A stretch of 63,790 nt of DNA, the filler included, from Lenisia limosa (Eukaryota > Protista > Breviatea): NCBI GenBank assembly GCA_001655205.1. It is 12 parts of 12 records of this genome, joined end to end, with 100 filler letters (N's around TTAATTAATTAA, not from the genome) between each part and the next. Parts side by side here need not be neighbours in the genome. Positions count along the whole stretch, not along the records: positions 7,349 to 14,747 come from LPNZ01009235.1; 11 more parts are not named here. One strand, given 5' to 3'. The notes beneath the pieces are model-generated. The model ran no database searches. It saw only the letters and a list, made by a program, of their open reading frames with translations, and was not told the origin of the DNA. The position numbers and the translations under genes are program-made. Shown piece after piece: positions 7,349-14,747 of the stretch (positions are counted from its first letter, which is position 1; the number at the start of each line of letters is the position of its first letter).

Positions 7349-7479
7349 GCTATAATCCATTGCTTGCTTTTGGCTAATTACACGATTTATTCCTACATTT
7401 AGCAACCTATGATTCCTACTCGAAAATCCTGCGGATTTTACTCGCAACGGAATCATAGCCAAACCGTTGGCAAACATTA
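7349..7479 (+). repeat. attC-like element 1 (left end truncated by scaffold edge)
   Basis: Left arm GCTATAATCCATTGC pairs with right arm GCAACGGAATCATAGC. Ends AAACC-GTTGGCAAACATTA (GTT at 7466). Confidence 0.8.
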
Positions 7480-7481
7480 GA

Positions 7482-7991
7482 ATGAACGACGACAGAAGAA
7501 AGAAAATCGAGTTATTAAAAAGAAAAAATAAAGTCAAAAACGATGTGAAATTTTTGACTGAATTCTATGCGGATATAGAAATCGTTGAATTTCTGACAAA
7601 TGACGAATTGAATAAAATGTTTGCATTCGACAAAAAGGAAGATGTTAGAAATTATAATCTTGAATTTTCTTACTCGCCATCTGAAAACGAAACTGTGAAA
7701 TCAGACTTATCCGACTTGATTGAAGACAGTTTTTTGTTCAAACCTTATGATTTAAGCGACCAAACTTATTGCTTAACCCATAAAACAGAATTCAATAAAA
7801 TCTTTGAGAGAACATTTATAGAAAATAACATTCCGACTTTGATTTACACTAGCGATGGAGAAATATCAATTGTGGTTTCTAAAGAGGTTGTCGATTACGA
7901 ATTAAAAGACGGAATTAAAACTCAAAAAGAATGGTGGAATATAATTGTAGGAGGAATAAAAGGAATAAAACAAATCATAAATAAAAAATAA
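7482..7991 (+). CDS. Hypothetical protein, 169 aa, cassette cargo
   Basis: ATG at 7482, 16 nt after the GTT. Stop TAA (7989-7991) lies inside the end box TAACGTTTGCCAAC. No recognisable domain. Confidence 0.8.
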   Translation: MNDDRRKKIELLKRKNKVKNDVKFLTEFYADIEIVEFLTNDELNKMFAFDKKEDVRNYNLEFSYSPSENETVKSDLSDLIEDSFLFKPYDLSDQTYCLTHKTEFNKIFERTFIENNIPTLIYTSDGEISIVVSKEVVDYELKDGIKTQKEWWNIIVGGIKGIKQIINKK

Positions 7992-8050
7992 CGTTTGCCA
8001 ACACCGGCTATAGTTCATTGCTTCTGACTTTCCTCTCGGAAAGTCCTCGC
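7989..8050 (+). repeat. attC-like element 2 (right half lost in N gap)
   Basis: TAACGTTTGCCAAC-ACC-GGCTATAGTTCATTGC followed by sub-hairpin GACTTTCC-TCTC-GGAAAGTC. Confidence 0.75.
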
Positions 8051-8090
8051 NNNNNNNNNNNNNNNNNNNNNNNNNNNNNNNNNNNNNNNN

Positions 8091-8828
8091 GCTTTAACAA
8101 TATACTTTTTCCTATTAACTAACTTCTGCTTCTCTCAGATAAAGAAAAAGGATTTGAACGGAATTTGGAAAACCAATACGGAGTTGTTTTCAAAAGCGGA
8201 CACAATTAAATTTTATTCAAATATTAAAGATTGTTACCAAACAAAATGGACAATAGAAAAGAGAAAATTTAAAACTAACGATTTAAATATTTGTACAGAA
8301 CCACCAAGATTAAGTGGAATTGTTGGTAAGGAGAAAATTAAGTTGAGAAAAACAGATTTCGGGCAAGTAATTGAACATTATCAAAACGGAATTCTTGCTG
8401 ACAAATTCAGAATCGTCGAATTAAAAGAACAAAATTCACAGGAACTGAAATTAATGCGTTTTGACAAGTTATCTGAACAAAAGGTTTATAAATATGTGGA
8501 CTCTTTAGTTTTCAAAGTTCTGAACTACAATCCAGATAGTACAACGAACAATTATGGAGTAAAAATTTCGGAATCTAATCAGAATGTGAAAATAAAAATA
8601 CGAGATGGTGGAATTGGAAATCTAGAACCACTTGTTGTAGTGAATGGACGACCATTACAAAATAGAGAACCATTGAAAGAACTATTGCTTGTGGAAACTT
8701 ATGCTATTAAATATCTGACTAAAGAACAATCAGCAAGTATTTACGGTTCGAGAGCAATAAATGGAGTTATTTTACTATTGACATCTGAAAAAAGATTTAA
8801 AAAAATATGGAAAAAATACGGCAGGTAA
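8091..8828 (+). CDS. Secreted protein with C-terminal TonB-dependent-receptor (SusC-type) plug-like domain, 5' end in gap
   Basis: The frame is open from 8091 (ALTIYFFLLTNFCFSQ, signal-peptide-like). C-terminus EPLVVVNGRP...SASIYGSRAINGVILLLT matches the SusC plug motif. No beta-barrel follows. Confidence 0.75.
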   Translation, partial: ALTIYFFLLTNFCFSQIKKKDLNGIWKTNTELFSKADTIKFYSNIKDCYQTKWTIEKRKFKTNDLNICTEPPRLSGIVGKEKIKLRKTDFGQVIEHYQNGILADKFRIVELKEQNSQELKLMRFDKLSEQKVYKYVDSLVFKVLNYNPDSTTNNYGVKISESNQNVKIKIRDGGIGNLEPLVVVNGRPLQNREPLKELLLVETYAIKYLTKEQSASIYGSRAINGVILLLTSEKRFKKIWKKYGR

Positions 8829-8886
8829 CAATGTATAACCGCAATTACGGCGGATTCGACTACGTCCGAATCCACTCGGAATTGCT
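8816..8886 (+). repeat. attC-like element 3 (right half lost in gap)
   Basis: ATACGGCAGGTAAC-AAT-GTATAACCGCAATTACGG. The internal sequence is nearly identical to element 5. Confidence 0.75.
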
Positions 8887-9010
8887 NNNNNNNNNNNNNN
8901 NNNNNNNNNNNNNNNNNNNNNNNNNNNNNNNNNNNNNNNNNNNNNNNNNNNNNNNNNNNNNNNNNNNNNNNNNNNNNNNNNNNNNNNNNNNNNNNNNTAA
9001 AAAAACTAAC

Positions 9011-9247
9011 GTGGAACAACTAACAGAAGAAGAAAAGTTAAAGAAATTTGAACCTTTCGTAAATAGATATAAAGAAATGATGCTACTTGCGTTTAAGGAA
9101 GGTTATAAAGGAGAAAAAGGAATTTTAGAGTATTACTTAACTGTGATAAAAATGGCAGAATACTTAAAAGAAAATTATGACCCTAAAGACCCTTCAAAAA
9201 CTCTTGGTATAATCCCTCGAATTCATTATACCTTTGAGAAAGCATAA
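9011..9247 (+). CDS. Small hypothetical protein, about 78 aa (start uncertain, may begin in gap)
   Basis: GTG at 9011, reading MEQLTEEEKLKKFEPF. Overlaps the opposite-strand ORF by 65 nt. Confidence 0.45.
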   Translation: MEQLTEEEKLKKFEPFVNRYKEMMLLAFKEGYKGEKGILEYYLTVIKMAEYLKENYDPKDPSKTLGIIPRIHYTFEKA

Positions 9248-9506
9248 GGTTAAGAATACTGTTAAAAGCAGTTGTTTTATGATAGTATTCTTGACCATCT
9301 ATAAATACCGACTCTCTGATTGGGAAATTTTTATGGATGTATTTGTGTAGGGAATTTTTGTTAGCGGATATTTCAAACTCAATGTCTGACTTATTAAAAT
9401 TAGACTTATCAAGATTTCTAAGGAACTTTTTAAATAAACTGACCTTTGAACTTATTAAATTATCAAAATTTGTTTTTTCTTGTTCTAATGTAATAGTATC
9501 TGACAT
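9183..9506 (-). CDS. Hypothetical protein, 107 aa, antisense to the array
   Basis: ATG at 9506 (MSDTITLEQEK). The ORF-track extension to 9623 runs into element 4 and is probably not real. Confidence 0.45.
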   Translation of the reverse strand: MSDTITLEQEKTNFDNLISSKVSLFKKFLRNLDKSNFNKSDIEFEISANKNSLHKYIHKNFPIRESVFIDGQEYYHKTTAFNSILNLMLSQRYNEFEGLYQEFLKGL

Positions 9507-9539
9507 AATTAAAAATTTTCTGACTAAATTAACAAAAAA

Positions 9540-9684
9540 ATACTGTGTACAACACAGTATATAAAAAATAACTAGGCAAGTGCCGAGCCTAGAATTTCGG
9601 CAAATAAAAAACACAACGGACATACGAAAATTTAGCGTTTATTTACACGTTACTTTTCATATACAAAACCGTTATGTGCAAGCT
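9540..9684 (+). repeat. attC-like element 4 (complete, AAC 9551 to GTT 9673 = 123 bp)
   Basis: Arms GTATATAAAAAATAAC and GTTACTTTTCATATAC. Boxes ATACTGTGTACAAC and GTTATGTGCAAGCT. Confidence 0.85.
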
Positions 9685-9710
9685 GAAAAAACAGCTCGTA
9701 ATAGAATATA

Positions 9711-10226
9711 ATGACCGAACAAGCAATAATAAAACAGATTGGAAAACCAGCGGAAATTGACTTTCGAAAACCGAAAGCAATCGGAAGTGCTGGATTTTAT
9801 CTTAAGTCATTTAAAGCTAAAAACCCTGAATCTGAAAATTTGAAACTGGATTCAAAATGCAACTTTGAAAAGCGGACAAACGGAATTTTATTACGTGCGA
9901 ATTATTCGAATAAGCTGACCGCAATACCAATCCCAAAAGAAAGTATAATCGGAATTACAATCACGAGAGGAAAAGAAACGATTGCCCCATTTTTTTTATC
10001 GCCAATGTGGATTTTATTAAAACTCGGAGTTTCGAAATTATACGCTCGATATTTTAAAATTTTAATCAGCGAATATTCGATTGACCAAATGGAATTGAAT
10101 TTAAAAACGGCTGAATATGAAATGGACTTTATAGCAAACGGATATCTATTCGAAAGACAAAAAAGTTTCTTTGAAAATCTGAATTACAAAAACAAATTAA
10201 AAACAATAATAAAAGCCAGCACATAA
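9711..10226 (+). CDS. Hypothetical protein, 171 aa, cassette cargo
   Basis: Clean ATG-TAA ORF whose stop overlaps the AAC of the end box AGCCAGCACATAAC. One moderately hydrophobic segment. Confidence 0.8.
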   Translation: MTEQAIIKQIGKPAEIDFRKPKAIGSAGFYLKSFKAKNPESENLKLDSKCNFEKRTNGILLRANYSNKLTAIPIPKESIIGITITRGKETIAPFFLSPMWILLKLGVSKLYARYFKILISEYSIDQMELNLKTAEYEMDFIANGYLFERQKSFFENLNYKNKLKTIIKAST

Positions 10227-10320
10227 CAATGTATAACCGCAATTACGGCGGATTCGACTACGTTCGAATCCACTCGGAATTGCGAGCGTCAGTGCTTACT
10301 CGAATATTAACGCATAAAAC
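10214..10320 (+). repeat. attC-like element 5 (right end lost in gap)
   Basis: AAC-AAT-GTATAACCGCAATTACGGCGGATTCGACTACG, matching element 3 over about 59 nt with one mismatch. Confidence 0.8.
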
Positions 10321-10330
10321 NNNNNNNNNN

Positions 10331-11065
10331 ATTACATTAGGATTACTTTGTTTATTTTCAAATCTGATTTTTAGTCAGATTACTTTAGAACATTCTTACA
10401 CTGGAAACTCTCAACTTTTATATTCTGGTTATAAATTTTCGTTCAATACTGAAAACGATATTTATTTCTATACTTATGACAGCAGTTCAAACTCAATTGA
10501 TATTTACAATAGCAGTCATACCTTATATAAAACGGTTTCATTACCATTTACAAATACTGCATATTTAAGTATCTTTTTTCCGACTGACAAACTTTTCAAC
10601 AATGACAACTTGATTGAATTCATAGCAATGGCGTATTCAAATAGCGGAACTTCAAGTATGCAATTAATTAACGAAGATGGTACAGTTTTATATGATTTTG
10701 GAGATAAAAACAGAGCTGACTTAAATAAAACGAATTCTTCAGAATATAAACTTATAACTTCCAAAAGTGACGGAGTTAATATAGATGTTTACGGTTTAAC
10801 TGGAACATTATCTGTAATTCAAGAAACGCAATTTTCTTTAAAAAACATTTATCCAAATCCAGCAAACGAATCAATTAATATTCCTAACTCTTTAGGCAAA
10901 AACAAATCGGCAGATTTAAAAATATATAGTATTAATGGACAAGAAATAATTTCAAAGAAAATAAGCACCAACAATGAATATATATCAATTGACATTTCTA
11001 ATTTGTCATCTGGTGTATATATTTATGAATTAAATGGAGTTTCCGAAAGATTTATAAAAAAATAA
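10331..11065 (+). CDS. T9SS type A sorting-domain-containing secreted protein (5' end in gap)
   Basis: Signal-peptide tail ITLGLLCLFSNLIFSQ. C-terminal IYPNPANESINI...KIYSINGQ...IDISNLSSGVYIYEL...RFIKK is the Bacteroidota Por/T9SS CTD motif. Confidence 0.85.
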   Translation: MTLGLLCLFSNLIFSQITLEHSYTGNSQLLYSGYKFSFNTENDIYFYTYDSSSNSIDIYNSSHTLYKTVSLPFTNTAYLSIFFPTDKLFNNDNLIEFIAMAYSNSGTSSMQLINEDGTVLYDFGDKNRADLNKTNSSEYKLITSKSDGVNIDVYGLTGTLSVIQETQFSLKNIYPNPANESINIPNSLGKNKSADLKIYSINGQEIISKKISTNNEYISIDISNLSSGVYIYELNGVSERFIKK

Positions 11066-11067
11066 AA

Positions 11068-11213
11068 AAACTGTTGCCAACAATGTATAAAAATAATTGC
11101 GGTTTAGTGCTAAAACAAAGGTAGTTGCGTGTTTGCTACATCTGATTTTCCTGCGGAAAATCCTCGCACGCAAACCCGCAACTATTCTTATACTAGACCG
11201 TTGTACCACATTA
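11068..11213 (+). repeat. attC-like element 6 (complete, AAC 11079 to GTT 11202 = 124 bp)
   Basis: Arms GTATAAAAATAATTGCGG and CCGCAACTATTCTTATAC. Boxes AAACTGTTGCCAAC and GTTGTACCACATTA. Confidence 0.85.
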
Positions 11214-11752
11214 TGAAAAAAATTTCCGCAATAATAATTTTAATTCTAACATTGATTTCTTGCAAAGAGAAAACTAATGAAAATCCAAGCGAAAAAAATA
11301 TGACAAATGAATTTATCTCTCGAATACATACACCTGAGCTTGAGACTGACTTTTATAGAATTTTAGGAACGACTTCTTTAGAAAAACATACTGCTGACTT
11401 TCAAAAAATAAATTGGAAAAAAGACTTTTGGAGCGAATATGAATCGGGGAATTTTAATATGACCAACCTAGAAGCGTTTAACAGAACTGACTCTAAATAT
11501 TTATCAATTGGAACAGCACCGAATACGGACGATACTTTTCAATTTGTTGTCGGACTTGGAACTCATAAAGAAACTAACGACAAAAACAATCCAATCAGAA
11601 AGATAAAACTTTATTTTACCGAAACAGAAAATTCAGAAGTCCCAGAAAAATTAATTGAACTATTTTTTAAAGGAGATTATTCTAAAATAAACTCGGAATT
11701 AAATAAATACGAAATGGACGAAATTGAGGATTTGTATTTGAACATAAAATAA
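11213..11752 (+). CDS. Lipoprotein of unknown function, 179 aa
   Basis: MKKISAIIILILTLISC is a type II signal with lipobox, followed by KEKT. ATG is 13 nt after the GTT and the stop is inside the end box TAACGTGGTACAAC. Confidence 0.85.
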   Translation: MKKISAIIILILTLISCKEKTNENPSEKNMTNEFISRIHTPELETDFYRILGTTSLEKHTADFQKINWKKDFWSEYESGNFNMTNLEAFNRTDSKYLSIGTAPNTDDTFQFVVGLGTHKETNDKNNPIRKIKLYFTETENSEVPEKLIELFFKGDYSKINSELNKYEMDEIEDLYLNIK

Positions 11753-11894
11753 CGTGGTACAACACCGTGTATAGCTTATTGCGGCTGAAGTGCTTAAACA
11801 AAAGTTAGTATTTTTTTGCTAACTTTACGCTTATCCGAATAACCTCGGATTTTAACCCGCAACAAGCCATACACAAACACGTTAGGCAAAATTA
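11750..11894 (+). repeat. attC-like element 7 (complete, AAC 11761 to GTT 11883 = 123 bp)
   Basis: Arms GTGTATAGCTTATTGCGG and CCGCAACAAGCCATACAC. Confidence 0.85.
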
Positions 11895-11915
11895 AAACGA
11901 AACGCATCAGAAACT

Positions 11916-12425
11916 ATGGAAATAGAAATGGATAAGTGCCATTATTGCGAAAATTATACATCAGACGAAAAGAGTTACTACGAACATACGATGTATGAAA
12001 TTCTCAATACATCTCTAATTCAAGGAATGAGTTATAGATACCGAGAAAAGAAAATCAAAATTCCAAGATGCACTACTTGTTACAACAAACATAATAATCA
12101 ATCTTTGTATATAACATTGCCTCTTTGGATAATTTCCGCACTTGGAATTCTATACTTTTTCACTTACAAAATTAACGACGGAGAATTTAGCTTCGTTTCT
12201 TTAATTCCAGCAATTTTATTAGGCGGAATTCCAGGCGTTATCGTGAATTTCATTCTTGACAGCTTAAAAATAACTCATAAACTTTTTGGAGTAAAACCCG
12301 AAAATGACATAAAAGAAAATTTAGAAGTAAAAAGGCTAATGGAATTGGGATGGAAATTAAACAAACCTTCCAATACCGAAGTTACAAAAGACGATATATC
12401 AAAAACAAGTCCTTACAAGAAATGA
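11916..12425 (+). CDS. Two-transmembrane protein with two CxxC motifs, 169 aa
   Basis: CHYC and CTTC precede hydrophobic helices LYITLPLWIISALGILYFFTY and FVSLIPAILLGGIPGVIVNFIL. Confidence 0.8.
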   Translation: MEIEMDKCHYCENYTSDEKSYYEHTMYEILNTSLIQGMSYRYREKKIKIPRCTTCYNKHNNQSLYITLPLWIISALGILYFFTYKINDGEFSFVSLIPAILLGGIPGVIVNFILDSLKITHKLFGVKPENDIKENLEVKRLMELGWKLNKPSNTEVTKDDISKTSPYKK

Positions 12426-12667
12426 AACAATATGACATAGTTTATTATCCGAATTGCCCAGAAACACTTTATAAGGTTGTTGCAACGAAAGACGAATATT
12501 TAGTGAGCTTTGGACCTTATAACAAAACTATTTCACCGAAAGATGGATTTGATTGTGTAATAATGAGAGTTCGAGACACTGAACTTAAAAACGGAGAAAT
12601 CTATTTTAATTCGACTGGAGAAATTATTAACGAAAACACGTCTGAATTGAGAAAATTGGAAAAATAA
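12422..12667 (+). CDS. Small hypothetical protein, 81 aa, translationally coupled to the upstream gene
   Basis: ATGA start/stop overlap at 12422-12425 (MKQYDIVYYP). Stop is inside the end box TAACTTTGCCTAAC. Confidence 0.7.
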   Translation: MKQYDIVYYPNCPETLYKVVATKDEYLVSFGPYNKTISPKDGFDCVIMRVRDTELKNGEIYFNSTGEIINENTSELRKLEK

Positions 12668-12812
12668 CTTTGCCTAACAACGTGTAAGCGCAATAACGGC
12701 TGAATTTCCTAATCGGAAATTCAACTCGTTTTGCTAAATTAAGTGCGTCAGCGGAAAGTACTCGCGCACTTTCCCGTTACTGACGCTTACACAAAACCGT
12801 TGTGTGTAAGCT
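12665..12812 (+). repeat. attC-like element 8 (complete, AAC 12676 to GTT 12801 = 126 bp)
   Basis: Arms GTGTAAGCGCAATAACGG and CCGTTACTGACGCTTACAC, with one extra base in the right arm. Confidence 0.85.
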
Positions 12813-12837
12813 GACAAAAAATCCGTGAAATAGAAAA

Positions 12838-13428
12838 ATGGGAATATTTAACTTTATAAAAGGGAACGAAAAGGGAAAATCGGAAAAAACCGAAAAGCCA
12901 TCACCTGAACATAAGTTATTCTCTGAAAAAGCTATGGAAATCGTAATTCCGACTTTTGAACAGTTCGGATTCCAAAAACACCGAATTGAAATCGGAAATC
13001 ATTTCTCAAACATAACTTACCGAAAAAACGAACAGTATCTAAAAATATCAAGTACAACTCATCCAAAAGATTATCCTCACTACTATTCGATTTCATTCGG
13101 AGAAGGAAATAGTGAAGATTTTTTTGAATTTGACTGGAATTCAATTAATCTTTGGGATTTTCAGAAAAAAATAAATCCTAATAGAAAATTATCAAATTAT
13201 GATTTTCCTTTAAAAAGTGAATTAGAGTCAAGTTTGGAAAATGCAAAAAAGGACTTACTTGAATTTGGAGCTTCATTTCTAAACGGAGAATTGAGTATCT
13301 TTTATCAAATTAGAAAAGAGCGAAACCAAGAAAAAGAACCATATAAAATTCGCAAGTTGAATAAAGATGGTAAATATGAAACAACTTACGAACCTAAAAG
13401 TTTAGAATTGAAAAAGAAATACAGTTGA
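12838..13428 (+). CDS. Hypothetical protein, 196 aa, cassette cargo
   Basis: Clean ORF flanked by GTTGTGTGTAAGCT and AGCCTACACACAAC. Confidence 0.8.
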   Translation: MGIFNFIKGNEKGKSEKTEKPSPEHKLFSEKAMEIVIPTFEQFGFQKHRIEIGNHFSNITYRKNEQYLKISSTTHPKDYPHYYSISFGEGNSEDFFEFDWNSINLWDFQKKINPNRKLSNYDFPLKSELESSLENAKKDLLEFGASFLNGELSIFYQIRKERNQEKEPYKIRKLNKDGKYETTYEPKSLELKKKYS

Positions 13429-13436
13429 ATGAAAAA

Positions 13437-13582
13437 AGCCTACACACAACAATGTGTATAATTCATTGCTAGTAAAGGCTTCCTTACGAAAATCCTCGCG
13501 GATTTTCTATTCGGTTTGTATTTGCTAAATTAGTTGCTTACACACGCAACGAAATCATACACTAGACCGTTGGCAACAAGCT
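13437..13582 (+). repeat. attC-like element 9 (complete, AAC 13448 to GTT 13571 = 124 bp)
   Basis: Arms GTGTATAATTCATTGC and GCAACGAAATCATACAC. Internal hairpin GAAAATCC-TCGC-GGATTTTC. Confidence 0.85.
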
Positions 13583-13608
13583 AAAGAAACATCCGAACAT
13601 ATAATTAA

Positions 13609-14730
13609 ATGAGTGGAAAAAACATACATTCTGAACCCTTTGATAGTGGAACAATAACAAAACTTGAAATATTTGAGGATTATGCCCAAGCTTGGATACC
13701 AACTTTTGTAATGCAAGCTCATTTTGGCGAGATACACATATTTGACTTTTTTTCTGGTCCAGGCTACGATTCAAATAATATAGCTGGTAGTCCAATTCGG
13801 ATTTTAACTAAAATAAATGAACAATTAGGCAACATTTTGAGGACTAAAACTAAAATTGTTTTGCACTTCAACGAATTTGAACCTAATAGAAAAACACAGA
13901 AAAAGTTTGAACTACTCAAAAAGAATTGTGAAGATTTTATTTTACAAAATCCTAAATTCAAATACTTTCTTTCTGTAAACTATTACAATGAAGATGCTGA
14001 AGAATTGTTCTTCAAATTAATTCCAACAATCAAAGAATACCCTTCATTAGTTTATTTAGACCAAAATGGAGTGAAATTTATTTCCCAAGAATATGTTGAT
14101 GAACTGGAAAGACTAAATACGACTGATTTTATCTATTTTGTCTCATCTTCCTTTTTTAGAAGATATGGAATGACAGAAGAGTTTAAAAAAGCGTTAGAGA
14201 TTGATATTGAAGAATTGGAAAATGAGGAATATCGCAATATGCATCGTTTGGTTTTCAATAAAATAAATTCAAGGCTTCCAGAAAATTCAGAATTAAAATT
14301 ATTTCCGTTTTCAATAAAAAAAACGAGAAATATTTACGGAATTATATTTGGCGCAAAGAATTACGCAGCGGTCGATAAATTTTTAAAAATAGCTTGGAAA
14401 AGAAACAGCTTAAATGGAGAGGCTGATTTTGACATTGATGAAGATGCAGGTAAAATTCAACTTGATATGTTCGAGGGACAAAAATTAACAAAAGTTGAGA
14501 AATTCAAAAACGAATTAGAAACAAAACTTTTAGAAAGAAATACCGTTACAAATAAAGGAGTTTTGATGTATACATATTCAAATGGTCATATTCCGCAACA
14601 CGCAGTTGACTTATTGAAACTTATGAAAAAACAAGGTAAGTTAGAATACGAAGGTAAATCACCATTCTTAAATTATGAGAATGTATTTAGAAAGAATAAT
14701 ATTGTAACCTACAAAATAATCAAAAAATAA
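13609..14730 (+). CDS. tcmP: Three-Cys-motif partner protein TcmP (SAM-dependent methyltransferase-like, GMT-wHTH type), 373 aa
   Basis: N-terminal TITKLEIFEDYAQAWIPTF, SAM-binding-like IFDFFSGPG, LVYLDQNG and a YGIIFGAKN motif near the C-terminus, followed directly by an ORF starting MAQSS. Confidence 0.8.
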   Translation: MSGKNIHSEPFDSGTITKLEIFEDYAQAWIPTFVMQAHFGEIHIFDFFSGPGYDSNNIAGSPIRILTKINEQLGNILRTKTKIVLHFNEFEPNRKTQKKFELLKKNCEDFILQNPKFKYFLSVNYYNEDAEELFFKLIPTIKEYPSLVYLDQNGVKFISQEYVDELERLNTTDFIYFVSSSFFRRYGMTEEFKKALEIDIEELENEEYRNMHRLVFNKINSRLPENSELKLFPFSIKKTRNIYGIIFGAKNYAAVDKFLKIAWKRNSLNGEADFDIDEDAGKIQLDMFEGQKLTKVEKFKNELETKLLERNTVTNKGVLMYTYSNGHIPQHAVDLLKLMKKQGKLEYEGKSPFLNYENVFRKNNIVTYKIIKK

Positions 14731-14731
14731 A

Positions 14732-14747
14732 ATGGCACAATCAAGTA
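14732..14747 (+). CDS. First five codons (MAQSS) of a probable DUF5131 (Gp37/Gp68, radical-SAM-like) protein, truncated by scaffold end
   Basis: ATG 2 nt after the tcmP stop. DUF5131 is the established neighbour of TcmP and often starts with an S-x-I-E-W-T motif. Only 16 nt are visible. Confidence 0.4.

Follow-up and report, generated by a model that had tools for sequence, protein, structure and literature searches.

Paired ends of gene cassettes in a probable integron-type array from a Flavobacteriaceae-like genome

The piece at 7349..14747 of the window (the whole stretch of 63,790 nucleotides analysed, filler included, from an assembly filed under Lenisia limosa) represents the central part of a gene-cassette array of integron type, which comes from a Bacteroidota (Flavobacteriaceae-like) genome. 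Its cassettes alternate with imperfect, attC-like hairpin sites of about 145 bp, each of which opens with ...AAC behind a gene and closes with GTT... ahead of the next. The full reading, to which we give a probability of roughly 85%, is that of an integron-type array with crossover inside GTT, in which the start box of a cassette and its own end box make up the outer arm of the attC hairpin. An earlier note had already proposed that the two ends of a cassette are the halves of one hairpin arm split at or just after GTT. The proposal is supported by the cassette-specific pairing of the ends, and further by three correct predictions out of three for sequence missing in assembly gaps, by a mobility boundary at GTT and by the tyrosine recombinase gene and attI-like site found at array heads.

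Cassettes, attC sites and assembly gaps

The features of the array are collected in the table. Another contig, L001, is near-identical to the window pieces (99-100% identity) and resolves two of the three gaps. Gap 1 (40 N in the window) measures 105 bp in L001, where the whole attC behind cassette 1 is 147 bp long (L001:10811-10957) and terminates in GTTACCTGCCATAT. Gap 2 (111 N) measures 75 bp, and its fill is independently given by a contig of run X1 (...CCGTAACTGACGGTTATACGAGACCGTTGTACACAATA). The flanks of gap 3 (10 N) are not neighbours in L001, which has a lipocalin cassette after 10320 and carries the T9SS cassette at another place. Nor are 10320 and 10331 connected by any contig of the run that is the likely source, which leaves the scaffold join at gap 3 without support. 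Run X1 has the same T9SS 5' end, as a loose end. The earlier note had predicted the three missing start boxes from their end boxes; GTTACCTGCCATAT, GTTGTACACAATAT and GTTGGCAACAATTT were all recovered, from the L001 gap fills and the T9SS cassette 5' end, and each is complementary to its own end box at 13 of 14 positions, the A/C mismatch again falling at its usual position. The attC upstream of cassette 1 (7349..7465) is not the one that precedes this cassette in L001.

Table. Cassettes and attC sites of the array in window coordinates (boxes recovered outside the window carry the contig name)
Feature	Position	Strand	Start box	End box	Remarks
attC, 3' part	7349..7465	+			5' side cut by piece edge; ends ...CATAGCCAAACC directly before GTT
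Cassette 1	7466..8002	+	7466-7479 GTTGGCAAACATTA	7989-8002 TAACGTTTGCCAAC	ORF 7482-7991; ends 13/14 complementary, C/A at end position 4
attC behind cassette 1	7989..8090	+			5' half up to 8050, then gap 1
Cassette 2	8091..8829	+	GTTACCTGCCATAT (L001)	8816-8829 ATACGGCAGGTAAC	weak TonB-receptor Plug-like ORF; 5' end inside gap 1; 13/14 with C/A
attC behind cassette 2	8816..8997	+			5' half up to 8886, then gap 2
Cassette 3	8998..9553	+	GTTGTACACAATAT (L001)	9540-9553 ATACTGTGTACAAC	two small convergent ORFs, 9011-9247 (+) and 9183-9509 (-); 13/14 with C/A
attC, complete, 145 bp	9540..9684	+			cassette 3 end box, hairpin, cassette 4 start box
Cassette 4	9671..10227	+	9671-9684 GTTATGTGCAAGCT	10214-10227 AGCCAGCACATAAC	ORF 9711-10226; 12/14, end positions 4 and 5 mismatched
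attC behind cassette 4	10214..10330	+			5' part up to 10320, then gap 3
Cassette 5	10331..11081	+	GTTGGCAACAATTT (L001:53)	11068-11081 AAACTGTTGCCAAC	T9SS C-terminal sorting domain (Por_Secre_tail, 1e-14); window misses first 109 bp; 13/14 with C/A
attC, complete, 146 bp	11068..11213	+			
Cassette 6	11200..11763	+	11200-11213 GTTGTACCACATTA	11750-11763 TAACGTGGTACAAC	ORF up to 11752; ATG overlaps last base of start box
attC, complete, 145 bp	11750..11894	+			predicted fold: bottom -36.4 vs top -28.1 kcal/mol
Cassette 7	11881..12678	+	11881-11894 GTTAGGCAAAATTA	12665-12678 TAACTTTGCCTAAC	ORFs 11916-12425 and about 12434-12667
attC, complete, 148 bp	12665..12812	+			
Cassette 8	12799..13450	+	12799-12812 GTTGTGTGTAAGCT	13437-13450 AGCCTACACACAAC	ORF 12838-13428
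attC, complete, 146 bp	13437..13582	+			
Cassette 9, cut at piece edge	13569..14747	+	13569-13582 GTTGGCAACAAGCT	AGCCAGTTGCCAAC (L001 and L002)	373-aa ORF 13609-14730, weak GMT-like wHTH; DUF5131 ORF begins after it; 12/14

Complementarity between the ends of a cassette

The five start/end box pairs quoted in the earlier note are all present where it had placed them, and its fixed bases hold throughout the window, with A at position 11 in 6/6 start boxes and C at position 4 in 8/8 end boxes. Of the 10 variable positions, 9-10 match between own ends in each of the nine window cassettes, whereas cross pairs average 3.7 and never exceed 8; in 200,000 permutations the match sum never rose to the observed value. 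Within-cassette pairing is also far above chance (z = 20 on shuffling within loci) in a larger set of 229 unique cassettes from 120 loci and about 100 Flavobacteriaceae genomes. Their attC sites were gathered with regular expressions that started from a motif inside the hairpin; divergent attC subfamilies, of which L129 and L141 have examples, are under-represented. Own-end complementarity in this set is 68-93% per position, versus about 30-60% for neighbouring or unrelated cassettes; along the end box it runs.79.86.86.01.68.85.88 over positions 1-7 and.87.92.92.93 1 1 1 over positions 8-14, with three to four types of Watson-Crick pair at each position. Between the two boxes inside an integrated attC the match is at the level of random pairs, again as the earlier note had held.

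The exception to pairing is itself conserved. Start position 11 is A in 228/229 cassettes, and the facing end-box base is C in 223/229 (204 at the standard position and 19 one base further out, as C-N8-AAC). The AA directly 5' of the end box is nearly invariant (.95,.93), and pairing ends sharply at 14 bp, complementarity past that point being.10-.25, below chance.

Complementary ends could be a mere relic. Were each attC acquired as a single 3' hairpin whose arm was split by the first excision, the match would be inherited from the birth of the cassette rather than upheld by selection, undecayed and with no present function. That the arm is unable to pair in the integrated array fits such a history, and the diversity of boxes could equally reflect many independent births, so covariation alone is no proof of selection. 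However, a freshly copied hairpin would pair perfectly, not with a constant mismatch at a single place; identical box pairs recur in different cassettes; and the mismatch, the 14-bp stop and the AA flank are conserved over about 100 species and several attC subfamilies. We regard this history as unlikely.

Probable crossover at GTT and the predicted folded arm

The cassettes are mobile, with their boundary at GTT. The GMT-wHTH/DUF5131 cassette (cassette 9) is identical from GTT on behind four different upstream attCs in independent metagenomes, and in L001 and L002 different cassettes follow after the next GTT. These observations bear on the notion that the repeats are structured intergenic elements of the terminator or REP type, with box pairing produced by drift within repeat families. 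The sites are indeed hairpins between co-oriented genes and are highly repeated, attC depth in sludge metagenomes reaching up to 60 times that of the flanks. But the pairing joins the two ends of one cassette and not the halves of one repeat, a single cassette is preceded by four different repeats and always begins exactly at GTT, array heads carry a tyrosine recombinase gene and an attI-like site, and the repeats match no Rfam family; we consider this notion very improbable.

Under the integron-type reading, the crossover would fall within the invariant GTT; the sequence cannot place the cut inside the trinucleotide, and G/TT is the presumed position. Because recombination would cross inside GTT, the start box, lying 3' of the crossover, would belong to the downstream cassette, and in an excised circle it would be reunited with that cassette's own end box. 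Circles are the probable intermediates. By arithmetic, a G/TT cut predicts circles of 681 bp for cassette 6 (11201-11881), 918 bp for cassette 7 (11882-12799) and 770 bp for cassette 8 (12800-13569). No excised circle or junction read was seen in the runs, which were covered as assembled contigs. A single contig joint that "goes back" was considered as a circle junction and rejected, the joint being explained by a repeated attC. In the integrated array, boxes next to each other show no more than chance matching, which prevents the 14-bp arm from forming, and excision must therefore proceed without it; because the excised cassette alone allows the full arm, this arm is probably important for insertion.

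Once the bottom strand is folded, start box and end box would form the outermost hairpin arm, made up in order of 3 bp of AAC/GTT, seven variable Watson-Crick pairs, an invariant T·G wobble and three more pairs. Past this arm pairing would be forcibly ended, TT lying opposite a pyrimidine-rich flank. Measured from the G/TT (AA/C) cut, the arm is 13 bp long, a length also found among the arms that Xer, Cre and Flp bind; among simple tyrosine recombinase sites, loxP and FRT have arms of 13 bp and dif of 11 bp. The invariant C/A is unpairable on the top strand and a G·T wobble on the bottom strand, and the inner arm holds two further fixed wobbles, at positions 7 and 12. It is tempting to speculate that the fixed wobble and the two inner-arm wobbles mark the folded bottom strand for the recombinase, although we rate the chance of this at somewhat less than even. 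Alternatively, and in our view doubtfully, the C/A is just part of a general thermodynamic bias for folding of the recombined strand and not a mark read by the enzyme. A bias of this kind (G·T on the bottom, A·C on the top strand) has been described for mobile-integron attC sites (Nivina et al.), and mismatches of the same type dominate the whole site here: A/C and C/A account for 1180/2004 top-strand mismatches, all wobbles on the bottom strand, and predicted folds make the bottom strand the more stable in 226/229 reconstituted sites (mean ddG -4.3 kcal/mol). Yet replacing the C/A by a Watson-Crick pair only shifts the predicted asymmetry from -4.37 to -3.50 kcal/mol, so that its predicted thermodynamic share is modest, about 0.9 of 4.4 kcal/mol, and comes at a cost of 1.8 kcal/mol to the bottom strand. 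Nor would such a bias need to sit at one position, 97-100% invariant and one helical turn from the presumed cut.

The recombinase and related systems

A recombinase gene is linked to the arrays. In L049, L044, L025, L055 and L114 a distance of 60-170 bp separates it from the first start box, and in L127, L138, L139 and L140 it is divergent, beside the arrays; array heads present an attI-like GTTTRTATATA-N(2-5)-GTT. The protein (277 aa, with a SAM-like N-terminal and a catalytic domain) is similar to XerA and IntI and keeps the catalytic R-K-H-R-H-Y residues. It lacks the IntI-specific domain of roughly 43 residues: in alignment A1 the relatives share the catalytic residues but have nothing that corresponds to IntI1 residues 198-199 and 210-250, and VchIntIA is matched in two blocks (3-177 and 203-276 against chain residues 5-177 and 246-319). 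The best match among solved structures is XerA (5hxy, E = 4e-37), in one colinear stretch. Scores fall under the cut-offs of the integron-integrase models and of the XerA, XerC and XerD models, and annotation pipelines label the family XerD or "xerA ... /integron integrase". This Xer-like protein is the putative enzyme for these sites. A plasmid-borne homologue (49% identity) has no recognisable array.

The resemblance to Xer systems (archaeal XerA, bacterial XerC/XerD) extends to protein length and domain make-up, besides the structure match. In contrast to Xer, which acts on a single 28-bp duplex dif site, the gene here heads cassette arrays whose sites are 145-bp folded hairpins in tens of copies, and the protein scores below the Xer model cut-offs. 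The Xer-dependent pdif modules of Acinetobacter plasmids are, like these cassettes, discrete units that have short recombinase sites at their borders and turn up in different contexts. However, pdif sites are 28-bp XerC/XerD duplexes in alternating orientation, unlike the long hairpins with AAC/GTT ends seen here, and the modules do not stand behind a dedicated recombinase gene; no pdif-type sites were seen here.

Integrons, especially sedentary chromosomal ones, share several features with these arrays. In both, the array stands behind an attI-like site and the gene for a tyrosine recombinase, cassettes are short, mostly co-oriented and promoterless-looking, and each ends in an imperfect hairpin with ...AAC and GTT... 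limits; attC-like sites are alike within one array, and an integron-like crossover in GTT makes a cassette's opening bases complementary to its own end. G·T pairs favour the bottom strand of integron attC sites as well (PMC5027507). The earlier note had called the pairing longer than the canonical 7-bp core and perhaps specific to this system. The first point stands against the textbook motif but not against real cassettes, since in 51 class-1-type (IntI1-type) cassettes, too, own-end pairing extends across about 11-12 bp (z = 8.3 for the outer seven positions). What is specific is thus not pairing past 7 bp but a length fixed at 14 bp, together with the AA flank and the unvarying C/A (G·T); in the class-1-type cassettes pairing fades at 11-12 bp, and the equivalent position is mostly T-A (21/51), with C/A in just 3/51. 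Other differences concern the sites, which are 145 bp long (211 bp in a subset). The arm facing the bottom-strand AAC has no regular extrahelical bases, and it is on the AAC-bearing arm that unpaired bases are in surplus; the central spacer is 3 vs 6 nt (or 2 vs 5), compared with 5-6 on each arm in integrons. The missing IntI-specific domain and the scores under the integron-integrase cut-offs set the recombinase apart too.

Our literature search found no description of arrays of this kind, and Bacteroidota have been reported to be almost without integrons (PMC9024848; preprint 10.1101/2024.07.02.601686). Self-pairing cassette ends are what an integron is expected to look like, yet the adjoining recombinase is without the hallmark domain of integron integrases. 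The host phylum is regarded as nearly integron-free; these arrays are found there nonetheless.

The two ends of a cassette in the window and in its metagenomic relative

The array piece at 7349-14747 is made up, by sequence reading and ORF listing, of short and mostly co-oriented ORFs spaced by structured sequences of about 145 bp, the attC sites. The earlier note had paired the first 14 bases of each cassette (start box) with the last 14 bases of the same cassette (end box). Every box that it quoted lies where it was placed, with A at position 11 in 6/6 visible start boxes and C at position 4 in 8/8 end boxes. Three end boxes have partners that are not visible in the window (Table). For the three cassettes cut by gaps (Plug-like, 9011-9553 and T9SS), the note had ventured the start boxes GTTACCTGCCA, GTTGTACACAA and GTTGGCAACAA. 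These can be read in L001, a 13.9-kb metagenome contig (ENA ERZ3820729) found via contigs carrying the 373-aa protein of 13609-14730, and 99-100% identical to all four window pieces. L001 gives GTTACCTGCCATAT, GTTGTACACAATAT and GTTGGCAACAATTT, respectively, in exact agreement with the prediction, and each filled-in start box is complementary to its own end box at 13/14 positions, with A facing C at the same place. Pairing extends to 9-10 of the 10 variable positions in each of the nine window cassettes, compared with an average of 3.7 in cross pairs, and the total of own-end pairing was reached by 0/200,000 permutations.

Coordinates and sequences of array features in the window and in metagenome contigs L001-L006
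Feature	Window	Metagenome contig	Sequence
End box, partner not visible in window	8816		ATACGGCAGGTAAC
End box, partner not visible in window	9540		ATACTGTGTACAAC
End box, partner not visible in window	11068		AAACTGTTGCCAAC
Window piece and its L001 counterpart	7443-8050	L001:10265-10872	
Window piece and its L001 counterpart	8091-8886	L001:10978-11773	
Window piece and its L001 counterpart	8998-10320	L001:11849-13171	
Window piece and its L001 counterpart	10331-14747	L001:110-4526	
Before GTT of GMT-like wHTH/DUF5131 cassette	window	L001, L004, L006	...catacactagacc
Before GTT of GMT-like wHTH/DUF5131 cassette		L002	...catagccgagacc
Before GTT of GMT-like wHTH/DUF5131 cassette		L003	...catagccgagac
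Before GTT of GMT-like wHTH/DUF5131 cassette		L005	...catagccaaagcc
attC site of 211 bp		L001:5244-5455	
attC site of 211 bp		L002:4349-4559	
attC site of 211 bp		L002:7604-7814	
attC site of 211 bp		L002:13022-13232	

The order of the pieces differs between the two sequences. L001 has cassettes 5-9 (numbered along 7466-14747) first, then six others, then cassettes 1-4 and a lipocalin cassette. Gap 1 measures 105 bp in L001 versus 40 in the window, and gap 2 measures 75 bp versus 111; the sequence of gap 2 is also given independently by a contig of X1, the likely source run. The flanks of gap 3 (10 N, window 10321-10330) are non-adjacent in L001, where the lipocalin cassette follows 10320 (L001:13171-13885) and the T9SS cassette stands at the start of the contig (L001:1-109 onward). 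No bridge across this gap was found among the X1 contigs: one stops at 10320, and another, with the sequence of L001, starts 84 nt before 10331. Since these contigs do not bridge the gap and its flanks lie apart in L001, gap 3 is an unsupported scaffold join, reflecting either an arbitrary 10-N join or an array order that varies between strains. All three gaps fall inside near-identically repeated attC sites (e.g. 8826-8886 and 10234-10320), which accounts for the assembly breaks. A joint in X1 that "goes back 1323" was considered as a circle and rejected, being due to the two copies just named; joints that "skip" come from different cassettes that have similar attCs, or the same box pair, at their ends. 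No circle junction appeared in the assembled contigs of the runs.

Cassette 3 (window 9011-9509) has an unusual layout for a cassette, with convergent small ORFs (9011-9247 on the plus strand, 9183-9509 on the minus strand) whose 3' ends overlap; neither has a Pfam match. An Rfam scan of the array piece at E <= 1 returned no match, and Rfam has no attC family. At two attC regions (window 10150-10341 and 13414-13605), summed contig depth in sludge and bioreactor metagenomes is 20-60x that of the flanking cassettes, so these site families must be very many-copy in such communities. The organism of the window appears to be of wastewater or sludge origin, not marine.

The box rule and the folded site

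The internal hairpin motif GAAAATCCTCGCGGATTTTC, common in the spacers, served as seed and occurs in at least 120 stretches of GTDB species genomes; among the matches listed, nearly all motif-bearing stretches are from Flavobacteriaceae (Polaribacter, Winogradskyella, Aequorivita, Tenacibaculum, Maribacter and others). Delimitation by regular expressions that left the variable box positions unconstrained gave at least 333 sites and 229 unique cassettes. Unique sites among those listed number 331, and 303/331 are 140-149 bp long. The arrays run to tens of cassettes and are spread over about 100 Flavobacteriaceae species and wastewater relatives. As in integrons, the cassette ends form an imperfect inverted repeat bounded by ...AAC (R'') and GTT... 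(R').

The pairing seen in the window extends to these arrays. Complementarity between a cassette's own start and end at end-box positions 1-14 is.79.86.86.01.68.85.88.87.92.92.93 1 1 1 (229 cassettes), as compared with.3-.6 when the end box is taken from the same integrated site or from other loci, and own-end pairing exceeds within-locus shuffling with z = 20. Three to four types of Watson-Crick pair occur at each box position. Pairing ends at 14 bp, the following positions being complementary in 10-25%, under chance. Start-box position 11 is A in 228/229 cassettes; the base facing it is C in 204/229, and in 19 more the C stands one base further out (C-N8-AAC), for a sum of 223/229. Immediately 5' of the end box stand two bases that are A in 95% and 93% of cases. 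The idea that this poly-A serves as the T-run of an antisense terminator was dropped, as the 14 unpaired bases would part hairpin from T-run in the array.

How much of this rule is peculiar to the Flavobacteriaceae was judged against class 1 plasmid arrays read by hand and against the output of a loose hairpin finder on 80 metagenome loci, which gave 51 unique cassettes beside IntI1 and IntI1-like genes (70-100% identity; L142-L221). In the hand-read set, contiguous own-end pairing is 13 bp in catB3, 12 in qacL, aadB and aac(6')-Ib, 9 in qacG2, 8 in arr-2, cmlA5 and blaIMP-4, and 4 in aadA1. Complementarity over the 51 cassettes at end-box positions 1-14 is.22.27.43.59.59.59.80.84.78.80.80 1 1 1, and pairing at the outer seven positions clearly exceeds that of shuffled pairs (z = 8.3). 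Integron cassettes in general thus pair with their own ends past the 7-bp consensus, and the pairing fades at 11-12 bp. In about a third of the 51 control cassettes, contiguous pairing is limited to 3-5 bp; these may have been delimited wrongly, so that the control errs on the conservative side. The suggestion that the long core is specific to this system thus stands for the fixed 14 bp, the AA flank and the invariant C/A mismatch, all specific to the Flavobacteriaceae family, and falls for pairing beyond 7 bp. At the C/A position, class-1-type cassettes have mostly T-A (21/51) and C/A in only 3/51. A is the commonest base at start position 11 there too (49%), but its partner is T, where the Flavobacteriaceae have C. 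Start positions 10-11 of the class-1-type cassettes carry a semi-conserved C-A (65%, 49%), facing T-G at end positions 4-5 (55%, 67%).

The circular junction of each cassette was reconstituted and both strands were folded with DNA parameters. In the predicted fold, an outer arm of at least 14 bp leads into an asymmetric spacer without pairing, then into an inner arm and finally into an end that varies and often branches. The spacer has 3 nt after AAC on the top 5' arm versus 6 nt before GTT; best-fitting spacers are 2/5 nt in 215/331 sites and 3/6 nt in 94/331, with an asymmetry of 3 nt either way. This departs from the central spacer of attC sites, unpaired over 5-6 nt per arm (PMC5027507). 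In attC sites, the arm that faces the bottom-strand AAC carries extrahelical bases near L'' (PMC5027507). Arm-to-arm alignment of the 229 sites, on sequence and predicted folds, gave no recurrent extra base on the '' arm of the inner stem; it is the ' arm that carries the surplus bases, namely the 3-nt spacer excess and occasional single bulges. In one attC subfamily the site measures 211 bp (Table), its variable end being lengthened by an insert of some 66 bp of AT-rich sequence (...GTCGCCAAATTTTTAAATTTGAC...).

As in integrons, the bottom strand is the more stable one, in 226/229 sites (98.7%) and by a mean of -4.3 kcal/mol. The reason is that A/C or C/A mismatches, 1180/2004 of those on the top strand, become G·T wobbles on the bottom strand. 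In addition to the box position, 67-69% of 3/6-spaced sites have A/C at inner-arm positions 7 and 12. Mobile-integron attC sites follow the same trend (G:T mispairs 1.24 vs 0.39; PMC5027507), but in the Flavobacteriaceae it is stronger and fixed in position.

Start and end box together make up the outer hairpin arm of the cassette's own site; crossover in GTT parts them in the array, and on the favoured strand their fixed mismatch becomes a wobble. Counted from a G/TT cut, the arm would be 13 bp long, the size that one monomer binds in several simple tyrosine recombinases. Neighbouring boxes in the array match at chance level, hence the full arm can form only in the excised cassette, and selection on it, if any, would have to act on the circle or at insertion. 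A rival explanation makes the complementarity a relic of cassette birth. The C/A pair, for its part, could reflect a generic thermodynamic bias. Its conversion to a Watson-Crick pair in silico stabilised both strands and shifted the strand asymmetry only from -4.37 to -3.50 kcal/mol, which lowers the weight of a purely energetic role; energetics alone could hardly produce an invariance of 97-100%. The wobble would lie one helical turn from the cut and would be impossible in duplex DNA or on the top strand. We consider it possible, at somewhat less than even odds, that the wobble is a structural mark which, together with the inner-arm wobbles and the asymmetric spacer, identifies the folded bottom strand to an enzyme devoid of the IntI domain.

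Cassette mobility and content

The last window cassette (GMT-like wHTH and DUF5131) stands behind four different upstream sites in independent metagenome assemblies (Table). Identity among the four contexts starts exactly at GTTGGCAACAAGCT; L001 and L002 share the cassette's own attC as well and diverge directly after the next GTT. Cassette 1 provides a second case of changed neighbours: its upstream attC in the window (7349-7442) differs from L001:10157-10264, the cassette itself being 99% identical. With changed upstream contexts and boundaries at GTT, the mobile unit must extend from within one GTT to within the next, just as the earlier note had inferred. Both the comparison of own with foreign pairing and the four contexts place the crossover in GTT, followed by bases complementary to the cassette's own R'', as in integron cassettes. 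Judged from an invariant triplet, a G/TT cut would look the same as a cut elsewhere within GTT. An all-against-all search returned no cassettes common to different species-representative loci, and the evidence for mobility therefore rests on the metagenome contigs L001-L006. The pairing of the boxes is confirmed, and the interpretation that the note had placed on it is supported.

Defence- or addiction-like cassettes are frequent in the arrays of L127, L138, L140, L001 and L002 (OLD-like TOPRIM/AAA, HEPN, DUF6090, D12 methyltransferase with NOV_C, HipA/HipB-like, Fic/DOC and RHS-repeat proteins), echoing reports on Vibrio chromosomal integrons. A few cassettes depart from the usual layout. At L002:8880-9365, small opposite-strand ORFs lie between two copies of an end box plus attC start (AAACGGTTGGCAAC ACCGTGTA...), which looks like an insertion into an attC or a partial site duplication. 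The 4.2-kb "cassette" at L002:137-4349 holds three genes (an AraC-type regulator, a 221-aa ORF and a thioredoxin/beta-lactamase-fold protein) and an orphan end-box-like motif at 2193; it possibly represents two or three cassettes fused through site decay. In L055 (6097-6943), the first cassette after the recombinase gene consists of two small ORFs in a toxin-antitoxin-like layout. Behind it, an identical copy begins, which is a tandem duplicate or else a wrap-around in short-contig assembly.

The recombinase and the standing of the arrays

The constant neighbour of the recombinase gene is a cassette array with an attI-like site. At the upstream edges of arrays, 60-170 bp separate the first start box from a tyrosine recombinase gene, which is divergent in L049 and co-oriented in L044, L025, L055 and L114. 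Homologues with 49-66% identity on long contigs again adjoin divergent arrays (L127, L138, L139 and L140), and variant AAC...GTT hairpins lie next to a homologue in L129 and L141. The platform of integrons, a recombinase gene with attI and array, is thus present at nine clear loci and, with variant hairpins, at two more. The first GTT is preceded by the attI-like sequence GTTTRTATATA-N(2-5)-GTT, and the first cassette after the recombinase already follows the box rule (e.g. GTTGCCACACATTT with AAACGTGTGGCAAC in L049). No recognisable array was found with a copy of the recombinase (49% identity) on a Flagellimonas plasmid. This homologue, in the mobilizable Flagellimonas marinaquae plasmid NZ_CP092416.1 (L131, 10952-13724), neighbours erm(F), a dihydrofolate-reductase-family gene and a Tn3-family transposase; PGAP names it "xerA: site-specific tyrosine recombinase/integron integrase".

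The recombinase consists of SAM-like and catalytic domains. It scores under the cut-offs of the integron-integrase models (TIGR02249, 199-206 bits vs 265; NF011946, 128-135 vs 435) and of the Xer models (NF040815, 203-210 vs 220; TIGR02225, 174-185 vs 330; TIGR02224, 172-176 vs 335). Its match to XerA (5hxy) is colinear, whereas that to VchIntIA (2a3v) falls into two pieces with about 43 residues skipped. In an alignment of six relatives (L049, L044, P0084, P0116, P0010 and P0058) with IntI1, the catalytic R, K, H, R, H and Y are conserved and IntI1 residues 198-199 and 210-250 have no counterpart. The array-head recombinase accordingly lacks the IntI-specific additional domain, to which the missing region corresponds and which a passage of PMC9668308 treats as the defining character of integron integrases; the same source credits Messier & Roy (2001) with describing the integron integrase as a tyrosine recombinase with an additional domain around patch III. 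The best 120 homologues measure 236-317 aa and are named only "tyrosine-type recombinase/integrase" or "XerD"; none among them bears the name "integron integrase" alone. In integrons, it is the IntI-specific domain, with the extrahelical bases that it binds, that is held to let a tyrosine recombinase use a folded single strand.

Bacteroidota are regarded as essentially without integrons. For Bacteroidetes, IntegronFinder 2.0 reported In0 elements as the sole earlier finds and a single complete integron, that of Salinibacter ruber (PMC9024848). A 2024 preprint lists Bacteroidota with the clades "previously found without any integrons" (10.1101/2024.07.02.601686), and Bacteroidota are absent from the taxon-specific attC models of Ghaly et al. 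2021 (PMC8352920). Full-text searches, in which literature coverage is incomplete and absence of evidence is all that a blank can mean, found no published account of Flavobacteriaceae cassette arrays, or of a recombinase lacking the IntI domain in an integron-type platform. We tentatively propose, with a probability of about 0.35, that the arrays belong to an undescribed, widespread integron-like lineage of Flavobacteriaceae and other Bacteroidota, in which an Xer-like recombinase that never had, or has lost, the IntI domain reads the folded bottom strand via fixed G·T wobbles, one of them in a 14-bp arm present only after excision.

The box rule adds a variation to the known design of integron cassettes and attC sites, and the presence of integron-like arrays with an Xer-like recombinase in Flavobacteriaceae may be a more important result than the box rule. 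In the control data, own-end pairing of real integron cassettes reaches well past the textbook 7-bp core. Detection tools that need the IntI C-terminal signature would miss such arrays as complete integrons. The fixed 14-bp arm with its obligatory wobble offers a precise handle on how the correct strand is recognised in its folded form. The cassette logic is base-exact and that of integrons, yet the enzyme is Xer-like and devoid of the hallmark domain of IntI, which may thus be dispensable. The arrays of the Flavobacteriaceae constitute a natural test of which integron features are essential, and possibly afford a view of how integrons arose from Xer-type recombinases.
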